Source: Amoeboradix gromovi X-113 (Eukaryota > Fungi > Sanchytriomycota). From it: 25,774 bases of DNA. The notes below the pieces were generated by a model. It saw only the letters and a list, made by a program, of their open reading frames with translations, was not told the origin of the DNA and did not search any database. Below are positions 1,849 through 25,103 of the stretch, piece after piece. The translations under genes were made by a program, and so were the position numbers. Numbering within the stretch: the first letter of the stretch is position 1; the number at the start of each line of letters is the position of its first letter. The stretch is taken from positions 1-25,774 of the forward strand of contig JADGIF010000056.1 in NCBI GenBank assembly GCA_018985225.1, read 5' to 3'.

Positions 1849-2348
1849 CCTCGTAAACTACGGCTCTCCCGGATGCTGAATATCACGTTCCAGTTCAGAC
1901 ACTATCAAATCACAAAGTGGTATGAAACACTGGCGAAATATTGTGTTCTCAGACCGTAATCTAAAATCTCTGAACTTGCCAAGTCTGTCTTTAAGTCGAT
2001 TTCCATCCATTCAGATAGTCTGAGAGGCCATGATTTGGACAGTTGTACAGCTTTTTACTCTTAAATAATCGTATGAGTTTTGAGACTGTCGGTCTCGAGA
2101 TATCCTTGGTGCGGTAAGAAGGACTGAGAAATAAGGTGGGTGAATGAGGGCCCCAATAGGCTAGTCTGCATATATTTTACTGTGAAAGAACGGTAGGGAG
2201 AATAGATAAGTATTTAGAAGCAAGCTATTTCAGGAGAAATTACATAATCAGTCTTATGAAGGACTGTAGAGAGCTCTGCGAGATTGTTACATGCATACAA
2301 TTCAGGATATTTATTAGCAGTTTGGATGATCCTGCATGCTCGATTAAA
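1849..2348 (-). ncRNA. Candidate long omegaRNA-like region of copy A (about 500 nt)
   Basis: Lies between the Fanzor stop and the ACGAGG end. Complementary segments: 2293-2339, 2082-2096, 2018-2025/1947-1954, 1969-1976/1892-1899. Confidence 0.45.
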
Positions 2349-2561
2349 CTAAACAAATCCCATATGCTTCAAGTAAATGTTCATTGCTGCCGTGTGGTCT
2401 CTATCTACTTCCAAGCGACAGTTGGTACAAGTTTAGGTTTCTTAGTTGGTTTTCTTTAGAGTACCACACCTTGTACATGTCTGACTAGTAAATGATTCAT
2501 TACATTTGATTATCGTCTTTCCTCTTTGTTTACATTTGAACTTCAAGCGTTCCTTGAATAA
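2349..2561 (-). pseudogene. tnpB: Fanzor2/TnpB C-terminal remnant (relocated RuvC-II Glu, zinc finger, RuvC-III)
   Basis: LFKERLKFKCKQRGKTIIKCNESFTSQTCTRCGTLKKTN*ET*TCTNCRLEVDRDHTAAMNIYLKHMGFV*. Contains E-x6-C, CxxC...CxxC and DRDxxAAxNI motifs, with two internal stops. Confidence 0.9.
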
Positions 2562-2713
2562 ATTGTACAGAAATCGCTTCCTGGCGTCGAAAGACAACTA
2601 ATTCTTCCATTTCTGCACCAGTTCCTCAGCGTTGATGAATGTATGCTGTACCTGTTAGTTATTTATATGGATTTGACATATTCAGGATTACATCCATTGA
2701 TTCCATTTGCCAT
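2562..2713 (-). pseudogene. tnpA: IS607-family serine recombinase TnpA, N-terminal MerR-like HTH remnant
   Basis: MANGINGCNPEYVKSI*ITNRYSIHSSTLRNWCRNGRISCLSTPG/KRFLYN matches the IS607 TnpA pattern (TLRxW..xGxI...TPGGxRxY). It has one stop and one frameshift, and the catalytic domain is deleted. Confidence 0.8.
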
Positions 2714-3032
2714 TTGGGAAAAGGAAAAATATCGAGTATTTAAGCTATTAAAAAAGTCACGAAATTATACAAAAATGCATACAAATTCGCGATAAATGAT
2801 TTATTCAAGAAAATAATCGAGCTGTTTGTCAGCTATGGTAAAAAAATGCTAAACGATTTATTTCCTCTCCAATATTCTACTCGATGTAAATAAAGAACTA
2901 ATTCATCTATTTTTCTGGTATGCAGTGGTTAACAAATCACTGCTGCTCTGAATTATCAACGGAATCAAGCCGATCACTCGACAATTACTTCATAGTACTA
3001 AAAATTCTCAAGGAACTTGTAAAATTACAAGG

Positions 3033-5360: not shown

Positions 5361-7356
5361 CTATTGATATTTTTTGAACAAGTCGTTATTAAACAACTGG
5401 CTTACTTCCCCATCATCTTTATAGCAGGAATTTTGAATCAAGACTTTCAAAAAGGACTGCTCATATTTTGTATTTTCAAATATGGTCTGTGGGTTGTCAC
5501 TTGGGCATCTTAGAAAGTTGGGTCCAAAAACCATAGCTACATTGTTAACCGTCATTTTAGTTATTTTGGAATATTGTGGCATACTGAATATTTGAAGCAC
5601 TCTAATCACATATTTACAAACTCTTCTATTATTTGGGCTTAGTTGTTCTATTACATTTGCTGCCTTTTCATAGCTCTCGCAGTTTTTGATGCATTCCTCA
5701 TAAACACTAGGTGGTATCAAAGGCGTAGTAAGTTCTCTCATCCAGAGCTTAAGAAGCGATGAGGGCACGTTCGGGTCTTGAATATCTCCCAATTCGTATT
5801 TGCCTGATTCGCATTTTACTTTCTATATTAGTCAGAAATACAAGTGCTCCAACCTTGTCCACATCTCCAGGTACTCTAAATATACCTTCGGTTGTTGTTC
5901 CACCTAGTTGTAGCAAACTTTCACTTAAAAATATCAAGATCCTCGGTACTGTCAATTGAGGCTCAGATTCCGCCTGATTTAACATCAGATCATCCAGAGT
6001 CTCCCCAAACAGGCTTAGAGTAAATGCAGCATCCCACGCTTTGTCTATTTCCAGTTTGGATGGATTCTTACCTCTAGGGCCAACAATACAGATTCTCTTA
6101 CCCTTTTTTAAACAGTGCTTTCCTAGTGTAACAATATTTGGATCCATCTCTAGAGCTTTCTTTGCCCATTCTTCGGTTGCCTTTGCTCGACTAATACTGG
6201 CTAAGGATTGGCTGACTTGAGAAGTTTCTACATCTACATTCGCATGTATCCTGAAGTAGTTCAACAAGTAAGACTCGAAGTTTTTAGAGGGAGGAAAGCA
6301 CGTTAGAAGAACTCCCATTAACTTCCATCCTCTAAGTAACGATTCTGAGCTCGGATTGCCATTACACTGTTTCACAAGTTGTACATAAATCTCATCACGA
6401 ATTCCTCCGGTTTGTATTCCTAGTTCACATACATTGGGGATAAAACTGAGGTCATTTTCATCCATAATCTTAGATATGAACTTGAAGTTACGCAAAGCGT
6501 CCTTGTACAAAGTTTTATTAAGCTGCATCAAAGGTTGACGAAGATGTTGCTTTGTATACCAAAGAAGCTCTTGGTTAGGTATTCTCTTCTTAAAAATAAT
6601 GCCCTTTTTATGCACGGTAAAGTACTTATCGGCGAATCCATCCATGTGAAACTGCGAAATATCGTCTTTAACAGATTGCGGCAAACTTGGCAAAGAAGAG
6701 AGATCACTGTTGCTATGTTCGTGTGGCAGAAACGGATTTTGGTCTTGAGCTAAATCTTGTCTAATCGCAACTGGGTTAGAAATGGGGCCGACTGAAGAGG
6801 ATTTAATTTCTATTTTTTCTGGACGGCCTTGTATCCTACTGGCTTGCAAACGAGGTGTCTTATCTTGTAGCAGCTTACATTGTAGCACTGTAGCAAACGA
6901 AGGTTTCGACCATGTAGCGGCTTTTGTAAAAACATTAAAATAATATAATTGCTTATATTCATAATGCCATAACTCTAACCAACACTCCTTATCTAAAATA
7001 GAAGGAACCTCTTTGTCGTCCTGTTGTGAGTAAATAAAATTTGACCTATTGGGGTCCAAATACCAACCAGTGCTCTCTTCGCTTGGATAGAAAAAAGATT
7101 CAGGGATGAAAAACCAATTAGATTTGTCAACTACGGTTTTAGAAGTTAGATCATTCATGATTAGATTACCTTTAACTTGGGTTGAACGTTTTACTTCATG
7201 CCTGTTGATCTCGTCTTCGGTCGTCGGGTTTGAGGAGCCGGGAATATTTTTGGGTTCTTCTTCTATGTGAGTTACGCGACTTAATGACAATTCACTATCT
7301 AAAGTGGTTCCTTCTATTTTGTTATAGTAGCTGGGTAAACGTTCCATATCTGACAT
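5361..7356 (-). CDS. WW-MyTH4-RhoGAP protein (ARHGAP39/Vilse-like); exons 7356-5842 and 5822-5361, 658 aa
   Basis: WW motif (WLELW..YYFNVFTKAATWSKP), MyTH4 (RDEIYVQLVKQ..RGWKLM..FPPS), RhoGAP (EGIFRVPGD; LLKLWMREL..PLIP; KMTVNNVAMVFGPNFLR). Two track ORFs are joined by a 19-nt intron. The start could also be 7443. Confidence 0.9.
5823..5841 (-). other. 19-nt spliceosomal intron GTATTTCTGACTAATATAG
   Basis: Removal restores the frame inside the RhoGAP domain: GDVDKVGAL|KVKCESGKYELGDIQDPNVPSSLLKLW. It has GT-AG ends and a CTGAC/CTAAT branch-like motif. Confidence 0.85.
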
Positions 7357-11466: not shown

Positions 11467-11676
11467 ATAAATGTTAATTGCATCATTTTAGTAGTTCTAC
11501 TTTTCCTAATTTCATTAAATTGGTGCTTTTCAGAGCGACTTTGCTAAATTGGCTCTTCAATACTAAATAGTTAAAAAGCAAATGGAACATCAAACATAAA
11601 AACTGGACTAACTTTCTGAAATAGTTTGAATCATTATTTCAGCTTTATTACTTTATGGATTTAAGAGACGAGTGGA

Positions 11677-12063
11677 CATTCACTAGTTGCGGAGTTGACG
11701 AGTATAAAAGGAAAATAAATATTCTGTACAGCTATTCTCTTACTCTTTCATCCAATCTTTATTTCAAATAAAATATCACTATTACTCTGTAAAAACTAGA
11801 ATAGATAAGAGTAATGATGTTAGTATAACATTACAAAATGACTCTAGAAATGAGTACCGTCTAAGAAAATGCACCTCTTGCTTAGAGGCTCAAAGACCTC
11901 ATATATTTGAACGAGATGCAGGATTTTTTACTTTTATTTTGAAGAGGGAATACAATCAATGAAAGAAAATTGGTATAACAGAAGATCTTTTATTAATGAT
12001 TTCCTGCGTATGGAGCACCTCCTTTAAAAACGAGTTAGTCTAGTTTTTATATTTGGTGTCCCA
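11677..12063 (+). mobile_element. Non-autonomous Fanzor1-like element, copy 1
   Basis: Direct degenerate repeat of 21629-22302. From 11801 it encodes IDKSNDVSITLQNDSRNEYRLRKCTSCLEAQRPHIFERDAG (second CxxC plus RD). Shared end TTTGGTGTCCCA. Confidence 0.7.
12011..12063 (+). ncRNA. Candidate compact omegaRNA scaffold at the Fanzor1-like right end
   Basis: A GCACC/GGTGT closing stem surrounds the hairpin TAAAAAC-gAG-ttagt-CTa-GTTTTTA (12025-12049). Conserved at 22252-22302. Confidence 0.4.
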
Positions 12064-12504
12064 CATACTACGGGATGTGATCCAAGCGAATCCGTCAAGT
12101 ATTGAGAGTTCCACATTAAATCTAAAAATCGTAGCGATTTTGTATTATTTTCTTAAAGTAGTGCTAAATTGAAAAACAGAACGATAGGTGTTAATGAACA
12201 GATTCGCGTTAGTGTTTATAAGCAGTTCTTAGTAGTCTAATTCGGTGCTCTTCACTTGGAGTATATTCGCATAGAACACGCAATATAAATCACTTTACCA
12301 CTCGTTAAATAGTGCTGAAGTTACTGTTAGCACCACTTGTCAACATTTTAATCCAATAATCTTCAGGTAGTCAAGTACACCTTGTAGCAATAATATCTCA
12401 TCTGGATTTGATAGTTATTTTTTATCAATCGGTTGTTGGCACTTGAGAGCCAATCATCATAATTGCCATTGTTGCTTAAAGCAACTCGAGCGCGTTTAGA
12501 TAAT

Positions 12505-13605
12505 ATGTTCACTCTACTCTTCAGCCTAGTTACGTCTACATCTGATGACTGCCCTGACTTGATAAGTTTCGCTTATGGTTTGAATATGCATATAAAGCAA
12601 CCCGCTGTCATGGCGAGTCTACTGGTGGATTGCTGCGTATATGCCAAGACCAAGGTCGTGTGCTCAGCAGATACCAACAGAGTGACCGGATTTGACTGGT
12701 ACAGAATGTCGCTAAACGGAACCATGAATGGGACTGCTATTCCATCTGCGATGACTGGAATATACTTGTATCAAAACACCTTGACAGGATCACTACCAGT
12801 CCTTCCTTCATCATTAGTAAGCATAAACATTTACGGTAATCGTTTGAATGGTACCATTATGTCTCCACTACCTGTGAGCATGCAGGGATTCTCTATTTCA
12901 AACAACTACTTAGTTGGCGGCTTGCCGAATCCCTTACCTCCAAAACTTCAAGAATTGGCTGTACAAGTGAATAAACTATCAGGTCTGGTTCCTCCTTTAC
13001 CAACCTCGTTGACAATTTTAGATTTGGGCAATAACAAGTTCTCCGGAATAGTAGAGATGCTAAAACCCACGACTTTGAATGTAAATGATAACTTCATCAC
13101 AAACGTTATCATTCAGAATTTCAACTCACTCAACCTCTTATTAACTAGCTGTGATATATCAAACAATCCTCTTTTGGAGCACTTCAATGATACCAACTTA
13201 CAAAGATGCACCAAAAACGACTTGTACAGCATTAACGACTTGCCTGTAACTATTAGCAGTTCCTTAGGGCTTGCAACTTCTACTAGCAAATTTACGACAT
13301 TTAACTTCAAATCCACTTTTATTCAGAAACCTAATCCTCAAACCACTGTCAAAACTTCTTCAGTATATCTTTCCAGTACCGAGAATGTCAAGTATGTGGG
13401 CTTATTAACTATAAACCCGCTAATCCGTTTTTCTAAATTGAGTGTACTAGAGTGGGTAGGAATAGTTATAAAATGGATTATTGGCATTGTCTGTATCCGA
13501 ACAATTATAAGTTATACTCCGTTCAAAAGAGAATGGAAAAACTACTCCTCCAGGCAACACCAAGCTTCTACAAGCAGCGGCTTTTCTATTTCAGTGGTTC
13601 GATAA
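12505..13605 (+). CDS. LRR receptor-like membrane protein 1
   Basis: Signal peptide, Cys-containing N-cap (DC..CC..C..RVT..W), plant-type LRRs (LxxNxLxGxLP), Ser/Thr stalk, one TM and a short tail with TPFKREW. ATG 12505 is preferred over TTG 12463. Confidence 0.85.
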   Translation: MFTLLFSLVTSTSDDCPDLISFAYGLNMHIKQPAVMASLLVDCCVYAKTKVVCSADTNRVTGFDWYRMSLNGTMNGTAIPSAMTGIYLYQNTLTGSLPVLPSSLVSINIYGNRLNGTIMSPLPVSMQGFSISNNYLVGGLPNPLPPKLQELAVQVNKLSGLVPPLPTSLTILDLGNNKFSGIVEMLKPTTLNVNDNFITNVIIQNFNSLNLLLTSCDISNNPLLEHFNDTNLQRCTKNDLYSINDLPVTISSSLGLATSTSKFTTFNFKSTFIQKPNPQTTVKTSSVYLSSTENVKYVGLLTINPLIRFSKLSVLEWVGIVIKWIIGIVCIRTIISYTPFKREWKNYSSRQHQASTSSGFSISVVR

Positions 13606-15726: not shown

Positions 15727-16263
15727 TCATAGTGTTTCGATTGTTGAATTAGAATTTTTTAGTTTTAACTTTGAACTAACATGCCTCAAAATCATAAGAG
15801 AGTGCTTTTTCACTAAACTTTGTTGATCAGGTGAAGTTGGAGAAGGAGCATCAATAAACTTTGAGCTTCTTGTCTTTCTTAGTTTGAAATACACGGGACA
15901 GCCAAAAAGCATTAATATAAGCAAAACACCAATTATTATTCCAACCAGAGCAATTCCTACTTGCGCTGAATTAGTGGGACTCAACACGTCTTTATACCCA
16001 TAATCTGAGCATAATTTCTCGTTGGTCTCCGGGCAATTGTGGCATATATCCTTTGTAGTGTTGAACCCACAGTCTATTTTAGTTATAGGGGCCTGAGGTT
16101 TACAGTCGCCAAACTCCGCCTGGCAACCACTACCACAATGTAAGCGACTAATTCCACAATATCCGGTTGCAGAACAACAGTAATTATTGGGACACCTTGC
16201 CTCTTTCTTGTTAATTGTTCCACAGCGTCCATCCTTTGCAAATGCTAGTGCAAGGTAGATCAT
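15727..16263 (-). CDS. Hevein/CBM18 chitin-binding type I membrane protein 1
   Basis: RCG..CPNNYCCSATGYCG....CGSGCQAEFGDC, then a second 4-Cys module and a TM ending GCPVYFK. Confidence 0.9.
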   Translation of the reverse strand: MIYLALAFAKDGRCGTINKKEARCPNNYCCSATGYCGISRLHCGSGCQAEFGDCKPQAPITKIDCGFNTTKDICHNCPETNEKLCSDYGYKDVLSPTNSAQVGIALVGIIIGVLLILMLFGCPVYFKLRKTRSSKFIDAPSPTSPDQQSLVKKHSLMILRHVSSKLKLKNSNSTIETL

Positions 16264-16744: not shown

Positions 16745-17254
16745 ATGATATTTCAGCGATGTGGGATTATTACCAGCAACACAACTTGCAATGAAGGCTA
16801 CTGCTGTTCAGAATATGGCTTTTGTGGCAAAGATAGTTCGTATTGCGGAGCTGGTTGCCAACTTGAATTTGGAACGTGTGGCGAAATTGATACGAAAAAC
16901 AATACCAAAGTAGACTTGAAGTGTGCTTATACAGAATTAAAAGATATTTGTCAAAACTGTGAGGCCCCAAACCAGGAACTGTGTGCACGTTATGGTTATG
17001 ACCAAAGTAGCAAATATGGCACTATCAAAATTGGTATAGCCACACTTGGAATTACTATTGGCGTAATGTTGCTAATTATGATGATTGGATGCCCATTGTA
17101 TTTTAAGTGGACAAAGCGAAAAGGTTTTAATTCGCTGTCAAGGTCATTATCAAGAAAAACTACGAAAACCATTAAGCATGAACTTACTTATCTAAACCTG
17201 GTCGGTAATAGAAGATCAGTAATCGATTCTAAGAATCCACTAGAGAAAATTTAA
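16745..17254 (+). CDS. Hevein/CBM18 chitin-binding membrane protein 2 (paralogue of 15727-16263)
   Basis: CNEGYCCSEYGFCG....CGAGCQLEFGTC, the same 4-Cys module (KDICQNC..LC..YGY) and a TM ending GCPLYFK. No clear signal peptide, so the start is uncertain. Confidence 0.85.
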   Translation: MIFQRCGIITSNTTCNEGYCCSEYGFCGKDSSYCGAGCQLEFGTCGEIDTKNNTKVDLKCAYTELKDICQNCEAPNQELCARYGYDQSSKYGTIKIGIATLGITIGVMLLIMMIGCPLYFKWTKRKGFNSLSRSLSRKTTKTIKHELTYLNLVGNRRSVIDSKNPLEKI

Positions 17255-19826: not shown

Positions 19827-20299
19827 ACCAGTGACGATTTACGCGATATGAATTATAGCAAAAGATCAAGGTTGAGGTGGTTAATATTCTTGAGATGGTG
19901 ACAAGGCTCACGTTGAATGATGTGATGCAGATTAAAATAGATTTCTATTTCTCCAGTTCTCAAAATGAGGACAAGTAATCATTTTACCTGAAGATGCACA
20001 TGCAAGAGATGTTATAGATAGTGTGAGCATTAAATATACAAGAAGTAGTCCAAAATCACAAGGACATCTGAGTCAGACTCCTTGACCACAGATATGGATC
20101 AGAATGTCAGTTTCATATCAGAGATGTATTTATCAGTTATACATCATAGAATGTTTATGAATCAAATCGTCCTCGAAAAGATGATCTCGATATAGGAGCT
20201 CACCGTTCCGATGGAATACTATATAACGTATATTTTAAAATTAGGCCAATCTGACACAATTCAGTGTTGCTCGCGAAATTTTAATTGAGCCATTCTCTG

Positions 20300-21538
20300 A
20301 TGATTATATTCCATTTTATACAGTTCTGCTTCTCTACATCTATAGACTGCTCAGATGTCATCAATTTGGCATTGGGACTAAATATGAACGTGAAGCAGCA
20401 AAGCCGCATGATAGCAATTAACGATGATTGCTGCAGTATTAACACAGGTGTCACGTGCAGTAATGATAGAGTAACTGAAATAGAATGGCCTCTACTCCAC
20501 TTGGACGGAACCATAAACAGCACTGCTATTCCAAAGCTACTTTCCATACTCATTCTAAATGACAATGCCATTTCAGATGTGTTCCCTAAAAGCTTATCAA
20601 ACACGATTAAGCAACTAGATCTCAGTAACAACTTTTTCAAAGGCCCTATGCCATCAGTGCTATCAACATCTCTTCTATATTTATACCTTCATTATAACAA
20701 GTTAAATGGTACACTGCCTGAAATCTTGCCACAAAGTTTAACTAAGTTTCATATGCATTATAACAAAGTCACAGGGTCTATGCCCAGAGTACTCCCTTCA
20801 AACATGAAAGAATTGTCGCTTTATAACAATCTTCTAACAGGTCATATGACAAATCCCCTTCCAAAAACGTTGATTGATTTACATATTGACGGGAATGCAA
20901 TGACTGGGCCATTGCCAGAAATTCCCGGCACAATAAACATTCTTTATCTTGGCTTCACTAAAGGCGTCTCAAACAGGTTCACAGGATCTTTGGAACTGAA
21001 CAGCCCTCGTATTGTTTATATCAATGACAACTTTATATCAGATTTTAAAATAGTTGGCGATTACAGCTTAATAATAGATTGTGATTTATCAGGTAACCCA
21101 CTTTTAGAACACTATAATGATCCAAGCTTGAAAAAATGCACTAAAAATGGGTTATACAGTGTAGATAAAATACCGATTGAAAGCGATATCCTTGTTGAAA
21201 GTACTTCTACAAAAACTTTGAACAAAATAACGACGCTAAAGTTTAAGACAACCAAAACAGTTAAAATAAGTTCGACCTCGGATGCTGTTACGGATCGCTT
21301 CTTAAGTTTAAGTTCTACAGCTGTAGTTGCAATTATGCCTCAATTCTATCTTCACTTTGGGTTTACCACTTTTGAATGGATACTAATACTTGTAAGATGC
21401 ATAATCAATTTGTCTTCTATAAGAACTGTTGTGCACTATGCGCCAATCACAAGGGAATGGCGGGCAAGAAAAGCTAGGTTGAGCAGCATAGCATATCTTG
21501 GCTCTATTAAATCACGAACAACTGGTAGTATGGCATAA
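20300..21538 (+). CDS. LRR receptor-like membrane protein 2 (paralogue of 12505-13605)
   Basis: Same N-cap (DCSDVINLALGLNM..CC..C..RVT.I.W..L.GT.N.TAIP), LRRs, CDLSGNPLLEH..CTKN.LYS C-cap, TM and APITREW tail. Confidence 0.85.
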   Translation: MIIFHFIQFCFSTSIDCSDVINLALGLNMNVKQQSRMIAINDDCCSINTGVTCSNDRVTEIEWPLLHLDGTINSTAIPKLLSILILNDNAISDVFPKSLSNTIKQLDLSNNFFKGPMPSVLSTSLLYLYLHYNKLNGTLPEILPQSLTKFHMHYNKVTGSMPRVLPSNMKELSLYNNLLTGHMTNPLPKTLIDLHIDGNAMTGPLPEIPGTINILYLGFTKGVSNRFTGSLELNSPRIVYINDNFISDFKIVGDYSLIIDCDLSGNPLLEHYNDPSLKKCTKNGLYSVDKIPIESDILVESTSTKTLNKITTLKFKTTKTVKISSTSDAVTDRFLSLSSTAVVAIMPQFYLHFGFTTFEWILILVRCIINLSSIRTVVHYAPITREWRARKARLSSIAYLGSIKSRTTGSMA

Positions 21539-21760
21539 GAAAAAAGGCTAAGCTTGTTAAATTAAAATGTTATTAGTAAAAAGTTCAACTAATGACAAGT
21601 AGCTTTATTTTTCATCCATGTTGCCACTCATTCAGCTAGTTGCGGAGTTGACGAGTATGAAAGGAGAATAAATAACTTTTTGTATCGAAATTTCAGAAAT
21701 AAATATTCTGTACAGCTATTCCCTTACTCTTTCATCCAATCTTTTTTTCAAATAAACCTC

Positions 21761-21864
21761 TGATTCATAATACTAACTCATAGTACTAATTCATAATACT
21801 GATTCGCAGTACTAATTCATAATACTGATTCATCATACTGATTCATAATACTGATTCATAATAG
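21761..21864. repeat. 13-bp tandem repeat x8, consensus TGATTCATAATAC
   Basis: Eight contiguous units counted directly, with no spacers. Confidence 0.95.
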
Positions 21865-21913
21865 GGTATATTTTCATTTAAGAACTATCCAGAAAGAACT
21901 GTCTTGCACATAA

Positions 21914-22282
21914 ATAGAGACCTTTAAATCAAAGAAGAAAAAGCCGGACACTGACATTGACACTGAAGAAGATGTAGTTGTTGGAACAGTTAAAAAGAAG
22001 CTGAAATTCAGCAAGACAAGAGTCAGGGAGACTGTCCATAGATTACACTTCAAAGAAATGTAGTATCTATGAGAATGAAATAGATAAGAGTACCGTCTAA
22101 GAAAATGCACCTTTTGCTTAGATGCTCAAAGACCTTTCATGTTTGAACGAGATGCAGGGTCTTCTAGTTTTATTTTGAAGAGGGGACTGAAAGCAATGAA
22201 AGAAAATTGGTATAATAGAAGGTCTTTTATTAATGATAGCATTTCCTCTGTATGGTGCACCTTTAAATACGAGTTAGTCTAG
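21914..22282 (+). pseudogene. Fanzor1-like nuclease remnant (N-terminus joined to zinc finger/RuvC-III end)
   Basis: 21914: (I/M)ETFKSKKKKPDTD..VVGTVKKKLKF. 22041: DYTSKKCSIYENEIDK. 22088: EYRLRKCTFCLDAQRPFMFERDAGSSSFILKRGL. Confidence 0.6.
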
Positions 22283-22302
22283 TTTTTATATTTGGTGTCC
22301 CA

Positions 22303-23354
22303 AATTGTAATAATAATATAAGCACCATCACTTCAATACGCTCTCATTCTGTATTTAAACAGAACCAAGCCTAACATGCTTTTTTCATTAATTGCAGATG
22401 GCTTCAGATCGTCCCATCTTGAATACGTCAACTCTAAAGAATTTAGTGGCGGATGCGAACCATACTCTTTAACTCTCAGAAACTGGTCCAAGAAGTTTCT
22501 CAAGACTAAGAAGAGTGCTTCAAAATTTAAAAGACTCCAAGAGGCCTTTGCGCTTCCATATCTTTCTAAAAAAAGGCCGCATTATGTGTGAGATTCTGAT
22601 GTAATAAACACATTGATACTAGTCACTTGGATTTATAAAAAACCCTATACTTGAAGTATATGCAATATTATCTATAACCTCGTTAAAAGTCCAAATTCCC
22701 GGGAAAATCGAGAATTTCCACAGGGAAACTAGCAGTGCTTAGATGTTCCGTTACAGTGATTGCCCACGCTTTCATTACCCTGAGGTGGTGCAGAATAAGG
22801 GTGTATATACTTATGTATATTCCTTGCTGCCATGTGGTATCTATCTCTAAATGTCAATTGGTATAAGTGTAGCCCTCCAAATAGGCTTTCTTAAGATTTC
22901 TACAGCTTTTAGATGCATAATAAGTATTAAGATATCGCATTGTTGCACACGCAAGACATACGGATTATTAAATAAATGCTTTAAAGGTTTATTTATCGTT
23001 GATCTTTTTCCAGGCATTAAAACACATCTAATTGTTCCATTTTTGGGCCAGTTCCTCAGCGCTGATGTATACTGTAACTACTAGTTATTCTTTAGATTTG
23101 GCATATTCAATATGACATCCGCTGATTCCATTTACTATTTACGAAAATGAAGAATATCGAGTGTTTAAGGTATTTGAATAATCTAGAATGGTCACGCATA
23201 GAAATACACACAAATCATCAATGACTGATTATTTTGCAATGCTCAATTACCTCTGGGTGGTGGTGGAATGAGCAACCACTACAACATAGCAACTGGATTT
23301 GTGATTTGCCTAACTTAATTCTTGACTTTCTGCTAAATAAAGACTTTTAATAAG
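22303..23354 (+). mobile_element. Old IS607-Fanzor2 derivative, copy E, split by insertion of copy C
   Basis: 22394 onward ADGFRSSHLEYVNSKE...TLRNWSK (tnpA HTH). 22645-22662 LYLKYM (Fanzor end). 23250-23354 aligns to the copy D scaffold (TGAGC.A.CACT..AAC..AG.AACT; AATTCT.GA.TTTCT...AAAT.A.GACTTTTAA). Left boundary approximate. Confidence 0.65.
22678..23251 (-). mobile_element. IS607-Fanzor2 derivative, copy C, nested in copy E
   Basis: Minus strand encodes LRNWPKNGTIRCVLMPGKR, YYASKSC, HLEID/HMAARNI, then the scaffold and TTTTAACGAGG. CC (GG on minus) is present at both junctions, 22678-79 and 23250-51. Confidence 0.85.
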
Positions 23355-23832
23355 ACTTTTGCAGCTTGATTATTTTCTTGAATAAATCATTTATCGCGAA
23401 TTTGTATATATTTTTGTATAATTTCACGACTTCTCCAGATTTTTCTAATAGCTTAAACACTCGATATTCTTCCTTTTCGCAAACGGCAAATCAATTCTAA
23501 ACAAATAATTAACAGGTACAGCATACATTCGTCTCAGACTGATAATCTGGTCCAAACATGGAAGAATTAGATGCCTTTCAATGCCTAGAAAGAGATCTAC
23601 CATAAGTAAACCTGTAAACCATTTATTTAATAATTCATCTGTGATTGGTCTACCGAATATGCGACAATAGAGACCATATGGCTGCAAGGAACATATACAT
23701 CAAGTATATGCATCCTTATTCAATCCCGCCTCAGGGTATTAAAAGCGTGAGCGATCACTGTAACGGAGAAACTAGCATTAGTTTCTCTGTGGAAATTCTC
23801 GATTTTCTCGGAAATCAGGACTTTTAACGAGG
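23355..23832 (+). mobile_element. IS607-Fanzor2 derivative, copy D
   Basis: Left end matches copy A. Encodes NRYSIHSS/WSKHGRIRCLSMP (tnpA) and RDHMAARNIYIKYM at 23669. Ends TTTTAACGAGG. Confidence 0.85.
23711..23832 (+). ncRNA. Candidate omegaRNA scaffold (copy D); guide would be the 3' flank from 23833
   Basis: CCC-gcctca-GGG hairpin, GTGA-GCGA-TCAC GNRA hairpin, 12-bp hairpin 23763-23790, further hairpin around 23801-23816, terminal GAGG. Conserved in copies B, C and E. The 5' end is unknown. Confidence 0.65.
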
Positions 23833-24000
23833 AGTCGACTACATGGTCTTCCTAGTTTTTTACATCCTGTAGTCATAACATTTACTAATTTGATAACACT
23901 TTGAAAGTAGCGAAATTACTCGTCTTCTGAAGTAATTTTTTCCCTTTAATAAATTCAATGGTCATACTATTTCAACGACTAACAGGGGTACCTGAAACAG

Positions 24001-25103
24001 ATGAAGGCTTTAATTCTAGTTGGTGGATTTGGAACTCGATTACGACCACTTACGTTAAGCAAGCCGAAGCCTCTAGTAGAGTTCTGCAACAAGCCCATGA
24101 TACTGCATCAAATAGAAGCATTGGTCAAGGTAGGTGTTAAAGATATTATTTTAGCAGTCAACTACCGACCAGAGTTAATGAAGCAAGAAATGGATCAAAT
24201 AGCTACTAAACTAAACATCAACATCCACTTTAGTATAGAGAGTGAACCACTTGGTACGGCTGGTCCTTTGGCATTAGCTCGCGACTTATTAACAAAGGAT
24301 GATTCACCATTCTTTGTTTTGAACAGTGATGTCATTTGTGAATTTCCTTTTGAAGAGATGTTGAAGTTTCACAACAAACATGGGAAAGAGGGTACCATTA
24401 TTGTCACCAAGGTTGAGGAACCGTCTAAATATGGTGTTGTTGTAAATAAATTAGATTCCACAGAGATTGACAAGTTTGTAGAGAAGCCCCAAATCTATGT
24501 TAGCAACAAGATCAATGCTGGACTGTATGTTTTTAATATTTCCATGCTAAAGCGAATACAGCTGAGACCAACTAGCATCGAAAAAGAGACTTTTCCTGAA
24601 ATGGCTAATGATCACCAATTACACGCCATGGAGCTCCAAGGTTTTTGGATGGATGTAGGACAGCCGAAAGACTATTTAACTGGAGTTGGCTTGTATCTAA
24701 AATCCATGTCAAAATACCATCCAGAGCAGCTAGATGATGCAGAGTACACAAGCGGGAATGTACTAATTGATGGAAGTTGCAAAATTGGTTCCAACTGTAT
24801 TTCTGAATTCATTTAGGTAAAATTGGTCCAAATGTCATTATTGGTCCTGATGTAGTTGTTGGAAATGGTGTACGGTTAAAGAATTGTGTGCTACTACAGG
24901 GATGTGAAGTAAGGGATTACGCCTGGATCGAAAAGACCATTGTTGGATGGCAAAGTATTATTGGCTCATGGTGTAGATTAGAGAATGTGACGGTATTGGG
25001 AGAAGACGTCCAGATTAAAGACGAAATTTATGTGAATGGAGCAAAAATTTTACCACATAAAGGAATTAGTGAGTGTATTCCAGAGCCGAGAATTGTTATG
25101 TGA
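24001..25103 (+). CDS. PSA1: Mannose-1-phosphate guanylyltransferase (GDP-mannose pyrophosphorylase); exons 24001-24796 and 24817-25103, 360 aa
   Basis: [48 protein letters not shown] and a hexapeptide C-terminus. The spliced length matches the family. Confidence 0.97.
24797..24816 (+). other. 20-nt spliceosomal intron GTATTTCTGAATTCATTTAG
   Basis: Removal gives [32 protein letters not shown], the conserved family sequence with no missing or extra residues. Confidence 0.9.

Follow-up and report, generated by a model that had tools for sequence, protein, structure and literature searches.

The window analysed here is a complete 25.8-kb contig (25,774 nt) of the alga-parasitic fungus Amoeboradix gromovi X-113 (Sanchytriomycota), taken from an assembly of 10.55 Mb in 1,319 contigs. 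The 10.5-Mbp genome was obtained by MDA and SPAdes assembly of 2x100 reads, and transposons are unmentioned in the text of the genome paper (PMC8371127). Self-comparison and end profiles identified five related relics, A to E, which make up 8% of the window (Table 1) and are almost certainly non-autonomous, internally deleted derivatives of IS607-Fanzor2 elements. The genes around them are fungal and encode MyTH4-RhoGAP, chitin synthase-like GT2, chitin-binding, LRR and NTP transferase proteins. The LRR membrane proteins are paralogues (12463-13605 and 20285-21538), and the chitin-binding proteins form a divergent pair (15727-16263 and 16745-17254) adjoining the chitin synthase-like GT2 gene. 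Frame breaks at about 5823-5841 in the MyTH4-RhoGAP gene and at about 24797-24816 in the NTP-transferase gene fit GT-AG introns of 19-20 nt. A separate, unrelated high-copy repeat with TIRs of about 30 nt ending in GTCCCA is present once in full (11583-12063) and once in part (21629-22302), the partial copy containing a 13-bp tandem array (21747-21870). This TIR repeat yielded about 745 candidates genome-wide and is often found near IS607-Fanzor2 copies; a fixed link between the two was rejected, as the distances vary and show clustering only.

Table 1. Relics of the window, junction classes and related loci. Positions are those of the window unless a locus is named.
Feature	Position or occurrence	Strand	Evidence or details
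Copy E, right-end fragment, the rest cut off by the contig start	1..83	+	ends ACGAGG then AG; right-end profile E 2e-24
Copy A: left end, TnpA HTH stub, junction J2, Fanzor2 tail; without right end	2361..2823	-	left-end profile E 9e-30
Copy A Fanzor2 C-terminal stub: E-x6-C, zinc finger, RuvC-III RD; two stops	2361..2558	-	PF07282 66.6 bits, E 2e-17
Copy A TnpA N-terminal winged-HTH stub: start codon 2713, one stop, TLRNW motif	2560..2713	-	HTH_17 E 0.017
Copy A left end, begins at core AG with C before	2709..2823	-	end profile
Copy B 5' part: TnpA HTH and linker joined to right-end start; left end missing	22303..22677	+	score 164 vs null 62+/-8 against C818 TnpA piece
Copy C, inserted within B and facing the other way; filler at junction J3	22678..23243	-	profiles E 7e-40 and 2e-13
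Copy B 3' part, decayed right end	23244..23354	+	score 73 vs null 23+/-4; profile E 2e-19
Copy D, whole element of 472 bp with both ends, C[AG]...ACGAGG[AG], junction J3	23363..23834	+	ends and profiles
Copy D right end with presumed omegaRNA scaffold	23700..23834	+	fold z -2.4, 5/200 shuffles
Copies near an older right-end relic	window 23354/23363; L006, L054, L067, L070		
Open 671-aa Fanzor2 on C542, EukProt P004065	L031:1476-3488	-	DPG, E-x6-C, RD motifs
Junction J1	about 25 of 33 copies		3-nt microhomology ACA
Junction J2	copy A and two others		
Junction J3	copies C, D and three others		filler of about 80 nt
Junction J4	includes the L007 and L008 copies		
Family-2 loci	C459, C578, C373, C392, C420, C689, C1028 and others (L032-L042)		

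The initial annotation had described five related relics with at least three different deletion junctions, one of them shared by C and D. Both statements were borne out, A and B having other junctions, and the relics themselves are real, but their limits had to be redrawn: copy A starts at 2823 and not at 2865, copy C at 23243, and copy D occupies 23363-23834. Copy E is 95% identical to the right end of copy D (23752-23834) across 83 nt. Copy B is old and diverged; its 5' part gave a peptide match of 44% across 34 aa (E 6e-9) and abuts the partial TIR repeat, which ends at 22302. Copy C is 78% identical to a copy on C459 (L012), and its right end is followed by TT where AG is expected. Copy D was inserted 8 nt beyond the right end of copy B.

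Copy A matches a family copy (L024) at 73% across 468 nt and, in its left part, other family copies at 73-80%. Both peptide remnants reported for it, the TnpA HTH and the Fanzor tail, are present; in profile searches the TnpB-type tail was clear (PF07282, and NF040570 with E 1e-13), whereas the HTH piece alone gave a weak match (HTH_17). Broken frames were compared as separate pieces or with X at stops. The HTH stub is 27% identical to full IS607 TnpA across 26 aa (E 4e-5), and a TnpA 5' piece on C818, which shares 68-84% DNA identity with family copies, matches the IS607 TnpA profile NF033518 (E 6e-12). As separate pieces the Fanzor2 stub matched with E 5e-10 and 1e-4, and it is 52% identical to the open Fanzor2 on C542. 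The E-x6-C motif before the zinc finger, as previously described, is found both in the stubs and in C542.

Copy A had been taken to run to position 1849, with a non-coding tail as its right end. Family similarity ends at 2361, however, and the tail bears no likeness to the family right end (score 26.5 vs 31.7 for shuffled sequence). A DNA search of the genome for a second copy of 1845-2365 found none. This tail can be aligned with a 153-aa ORF on C777 (L066:543-1004), the alignment crossing the ACGAGG at 1849 and continuing beyond it (score 124.5 vs null 69+/-8.6, maximum 92.5), and the window at 1803-2360 on the minus strand is a decayed paralogue of that ORF. We therefore rejected a long special 3' region of copy A and regard the ACGAGG at 1849 as a chance occurrence, as the alignment continues straight across it. 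ACGAGG also occurs at three further unrelated places in the window.

A genome-wide count, proposed in the initial annotation, yielded 708 right-end, 540 left-end and 560 zinc-finger candidates of this family (family 1), which are first-look candidates and not scored copies. At a mean of 578 bp per copy, family 1 accounts for about 3-4% of the assembly. Copies lie on hundreds of contigs among fungal genes (chitin synthase, RhoGAP/MyTH4, NTP transferase), and dozens of annotated A. gromovi proteins of 100-140 aa are in fact these stubs. In length-limited searches no Sanchytrium homologues were found, and every EukProt match checked belonged to A. gromovi. We collected 33 two-ended copies of 454-623 bp, which were chosen as best hits and therefore lean young. 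They share one plan: left end, TnpA HTH stub, Fanzor2 tail and right end. The copies had been called MITE-like, which suits their short length, non-autonomous nature and high copy number; they are not MITEs in the strict sense, as TIRs and TSDs are lacking. Among the 25 copies with the commonest junction pairwise identity is 85-94% and no pair is nearly identical, so the burst of family 1 is not very recent, and the family now looks mostly inactive. The mutation spectrum of these 25 copies shows neither RIP nor CpG bias. Five of the 33 copies have an older right-end relic no more than 25 nt away, by a rough count about 10 times the local expectation; as copy C also lies inside the right end of B, old right ends may attract new insertions.

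Sequence conservation in family 1 begins at C-AG-CTYGA on the left, ends two bases past ACGAGG on the right, and then drops to background. The exact 14-nt right end was found 196 times genome-wide, followed by AG in 165 cases, by A and another base in 16 and by other bases in 15, so that AG accounts for 84% compared to about 6% expected by composition and 0 in the reversed control. On the left side, 239 of 261 ends genome-wide are preceded by C-AG and 22 by AG after another base (92% vs 20% background). The ACGAGG boundary put forward earlier is thus conserved at the right end throughout the genome, but the full conserved boundary is ACGAGG plus AG. TIRs and TSDs were looked for at the family-1 ends and not found. 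AG on both sides, sharp ends and the lack of TIRs and TSDs point to a serine-recombinase crossover on a 2-bp core, and the crossover dinucleotide appears to be AG and not GG. A GG core with GAGG as target was rejected by the genome-wide end counts. At copy C, a GG core was likewise rejected: the bases outside its left end match the right end of B, and in a sister copy the start lies at this AG as well. GG is typical of most IS607 members (PMC6188088) and has been called strict for IS607 (PMC13565253); we treated it as a common trait and not as a definition. The core appears to be AG in family 1 and CG in the second family described below, and GG does not precede the left ends. The C preceding the left-end AG is most readily taken as host sequence, with CAG as the target. 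A search for an empty paralogous site found none, and a joined right-end/left-end circle junction was found neither in the assembly (one match with 2 mismatches) nor among the contig joints listed. A search for repeated 8-mers inside the ends, as candidate TnpA-binding motifs, gave AT-rich words only. Two of the 33 copies carry a flank duplication of 11-15 nt: in L008 the 15 nt that open the downstream flank, and in L007 the corresponding 11 nt, recur at the left end in place of its initial bases. Junction J4 is common to the two copies, and the duplications possibly stem from staggered-cut repair.

The initial annotation had further proposed that a full-length TnpA and Fanzor2 element exists or existed in this genome. 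The NF033518 profile found 24 TnpA matches, 9 of them above the cut-off, and the full TnpA of longer relatives matches Resolvase (E 3e-17), with IS607-family TnpA structures as best PDB matches. In C542, C459, C46 and others a Fanzor gene lies downstream of tnpA and overlaps it. The Fanzor2 on C542 is open and, aligned to ApmFz2, shows D471-P-G with P at the canonical glutamate site, E605-x6-C612 and D637; it has C-x-C in the first zinc pair and is about 55% identical to family-1 stubs. Its best solved relative is the mimivirus Fanzor2 ApmFz2 (PDB 9B0L, E 2e-13), and Fanzor1 matches were none. The overlapping TnpA of C542 has one premature stop, at the W of TLRNW. On C385 lie the 3' half of a Fanzor2 gene, including DPG, and a family right end; they are 90% identical to the short copies, and on sequence grounds C385 is identified as carrying the 3' half of the direct family-1 parent. 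E-x6-C and RD are retained in the short-copy stubs. C385 also has an inverted piece resembling an MDA chimera. According to the genome-search coordinates C565 and C977 extend in the same way as C385, and longer copies lie on C565, C977, C1, C878, C1033 and C1262. C818 and C46 carry TnpA and Fanzor 5' pieces from a sister subfamily. The proposal thus stands as far as a full-length element is concerned (24 NF033518 matches, C542, C385), but an intact direct family-1 parent and an intact family-1 TnpA are absent from the assembly. This parent may have disappeared, have failed to assemble or have been removed as bacterial by filtering, and mobilization in trans, as originally suggested, would apply to the past.

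A second IS607-Fanzor2 family (family 2) has the right end TTTAACGTAGG followed by CG, with 81 exact matches, and CCG or a near match precedes most of its left ends. On C459 it is represented by an open 204-aa TnpA, which matches IS607-family TnpA structures, and a Fanzor2 interrupted by one stop. For both families, the target has the form C-N-G and the right end of the element itself the form G-N-G, which resembles the GGG vs CGG contrast of ISXfa1 that shields the element from its own TnpB (10.1101/2023.08.09.552727).

At least four junction classes (J1-J4) occur among the collected family-1 copies, and copy B has yet another. The filler of J3 was matched only in J3 copies among the loci compared. 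A shared 29-nt deletion assorts freely over classes J1, J3 and J4. Within J1, linkage at 54 shared biallelic sites falls with distance (permutation p 0.0005), r2 declining over successive distance bins from 0.205 (<=15 nt) through 0.104 and 0.070 to 0.051 (>100 nt), compared to 0.046 under a free-recombination null and 0.39 (minimum 0.21) in a clonal simulation. The J1 copies are mosaics in which linkage is gone past 100 bp. In the Fanzor stub, alleles common to at least 4 copies comprise 25 synonymous and 10 non-synonymous changes (pN/pS 0.09), whereas private changes are near neutral (30 synonymous vs 95 non-synonymous, pN/pS 0.74; Fisher p 5e-7 for the split). As the stub sits behind one shared deletion, selection on it as a nuclease is impossible, and the shared synonymous alleles are most simply explained by recombination from several working Fanzor2 genes. 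The recombination is evidence of repair from homologous templates and does not itself name what made the breaks. A hairpin in the right end (window ~23764-23791) has two common alleles, one of them a perfect palindrome, as from template-switch correction.

By its position, which follows that of the right-end scaffold in PMC10711439, the right end may encode an omegaRNA, and the guide of copy D would be the flank from 23835. For copy D hairpins and a possible pseudoknot between a CCUC loop and GAGG were predicted, while the right ends of copy C and C385 fold no better than shuffles. RNAalifold on 40 copies gave no consensus fold, and over these copies the covariation score of the named structure was at chance level; double-sided changes numbered 12 vs 4.4 in shuffles, an excess that relatedness alone can cause. 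An Rfam search gave no matches.

The best explanation of these data is probably that nuclear IS607-Fanzor2 deletion derivatives were amplified to 500-700 copies in A. gromovi, and it is likely that they transposed by TnpA at an AG core. To the anatomy, ends, copy number, CAG insertion, junctions, parental pieces and mosaics observed in the genome we add an excision and insertion cycle modelled on bacterial IS607 (10.1101/2023.11.20.567912, PMC6188088, PMC10711439). TnpA supplied in trans by full-length elements would bind the retained ends, excise the element as a circle by crossover at the AG pair and insert the circle at CAG targets, and excision would restore CAG plus the flank at the donor joint. 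Because IS607 excision is scarless, copy number rises only if the donor site is refilled, and the break must come from elsewhere, for example from Fanzor2. With right-end RNA and a flank guide, Fanzor2 would cut the CAG donor joint (predicted TAM CAG) and spare the element's own GAG right end. Repair from a sister or ectopic copy could then refill the donor site and raise copy number; aborted copying during this repair could generate the internal deletions, and ectopic templates could supply alleles borrowed from full-length coding copies. That Fanzor2-driven homing in the native nucleus, with own-guide omegaRNAs, cuts at CAG joints and ectopic repair, spread and shuffled the family is a serious but still tentative possibility. 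If true, it would provide population-genetic evidence for a natural function of Fanzor, and the TnpA core and the Fanzor TAM would have shifted together from GG/GGG to AG/CAG and CG/CCG in one genome.

The mosaicism fits Fanzor-triggered gap repair, and Fanzor2 is possibly, though by no means securely, its cause. The main rival is ectopic gene conversion by the host, or repair of breaks made by TnpA, with Fanzor2 and omegaRNA uninvolved and the 3' part kept as a TnpA binding end. We consider this somewhat doubtful. It agrees with the right end being no better conserved than the rest (4-10% per 40 nt throughout), with the lack of a consensus RNA fold and with the dispensability of TnpB in IS607 transposition (PMC3627910, PMC6188088). 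However, all 33 two-ended copies, which were collected by matching the right end, keep 120 nt or more of it, while ends of 40-60 bp are enough for bacterial IS607 excision (10.1101/2023.11.20.567912); the target CAG differs from the own GAG as expected where a nuclease must distinguish them; and serine recombinase excision leaves no free breaks. Recurrent formation of J1 at a hot spot on already recombined full-length parents, with no exchange between short and long copies, would likewise yield synonymous shared alleles and could draw on the 3-nt microhomology at the junction, but a base-exact junction would be needed anew in about 25 of 33 copies, and the assortment of the 29-nt deletion over J1, J3 and J4 itself needs recombination. 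This makes it unlikely.

Because the genome derives from MDA and SPAdes assembly of 2x100 reads (PMC8371127), the mosaic might be an artefact of whole-genome amplification and short-read repeat assembly. Even among 25 copies 11% of 55-mers are shared, and assembly chimerism may contribute to the long-range part of the signal; the inverted piece of C385 is like an MDA chimera. Such an artefact could nevertheless not bias shared alleles toward synonymous changes, linkage drops by half from <=15 nt to 15-40 nt, which is under typical assembly word length, and independent Logan contigs agree with the assembled copies B and C without differences; we judge this explanation very unlikely. Least credible, at an extremely low probability, is an origin of the relics from bacterial or viral contamination or as Fanzor2 fragments within a cut-and-paste DDE transposon (Fanzor2* type); the end structure and the flanks largely refute such an origin. 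The TIR repeat with its roughly 745 candidates often lies nearby and a close full-length relative is found on a giant-virus contig, but the distance to the TIR repeat varies, the ends lack TIR and TSD, a TnpA-Ser stub lies within the copies, and the copies are located between fungal genes on hundreds of contigs.

By gene content, motif and end type the A. gromovi elements belong to the eukaryotic IS607-Fanzor2 group (IS607EU), from which the non-GG core departs. The known cases, Acanthamoeba ACa-1/2, mimivirus ISvMimi (ApmFz2) and ISvNY2A (PMC3627910, PMC3673617, PMC10530073, PMC13565253), likewise have a TnpA-Ser overlapping a Fanzor2 with DPG and E-x6-C and lack TIRs and TSDs. The cases found have few copies (three in mimivirus), a GG core and a GGG target, in contrast to 500-700 short derivatives with unique flanks and an AG (or CG) core with a CAG (or CCG) target in A. 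gromovi. Bacterial IS607, ISXfa1 and the C. botulinum IStron share with A. gromovi the 2-bp core on both sides and the difference between target and own right end at the base preceding the core (PMC6188088, PMC10711439, 10.1101/2023.11.20.567912). Their core is GG and their TAM GGG/TGGG, as opposed to AG, and CAG vs own GAG, in A. gromovi, whose elements are also distinguished by a nuclear host and the lack of an intron. Ghost loci of Fanzor in the zoosporic fungus Spizellomyces punctatus are similarly short (about 550 nt) and non-coding and keep both ends and the omegaRNA region; they belong to Fanzor1, have 30-nt TIRs, are not known to have a transposase, and their scaffolds are functional (PMC10432273). 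The A. gromovi copies, in contrast, are of the Fanzor2/IS607 type, keep coding stubs and have a putative scaffold. Several junctions, microhomology and filler DNA (J3 in A. gromovi) are also known from internal deletion derivatives of the Ac/Ds type. These are made by abortive gap repair after DDE excision, which leaves a break, whereas IS607 excision is scarless.

It had been stated that no conclusion was possible on IS607 transposition in any eukaryote (PMC3673617); IS607EU was later reviewed as a group of eukaryotic transposons (PMC13565253), and arguments on what Fanzor does for the element that carries it still draw on bacteria (PMC10432273, PMC13565253). With unique flanks and ends exact to the base, the hundreds of insertions in A. 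gromovi argue strongly for IS607 transposition in the nucleus of this fungus. A published account of the A. gromovi family was not found in the literature; Repbase, which lay outside the search, may hold other multi-copy IS607EU cases. The target motifs CAG and CCG with their non-GG cores are testable predictions for the two families, and the open Fanzor2 (C542) and open TnpA (C459) are candidates for assays. The synonymous and freely recombined alleles of these dead copies bear the imprint of template-directed repair and could be used to test the homing model.

A quick tree, built without named references, places family 1 and C542 together with two metagenomic proteins (SH-aLRT 99), one of which comes from a giant-virus (NCLDV) contig. 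A close full-length relative (L075, JGI 3300025632) adjoins NCLDV capsid genes and is without TnpA, and another close relative (L076) has TnpA; these relatives suggest giant-virus traffic.
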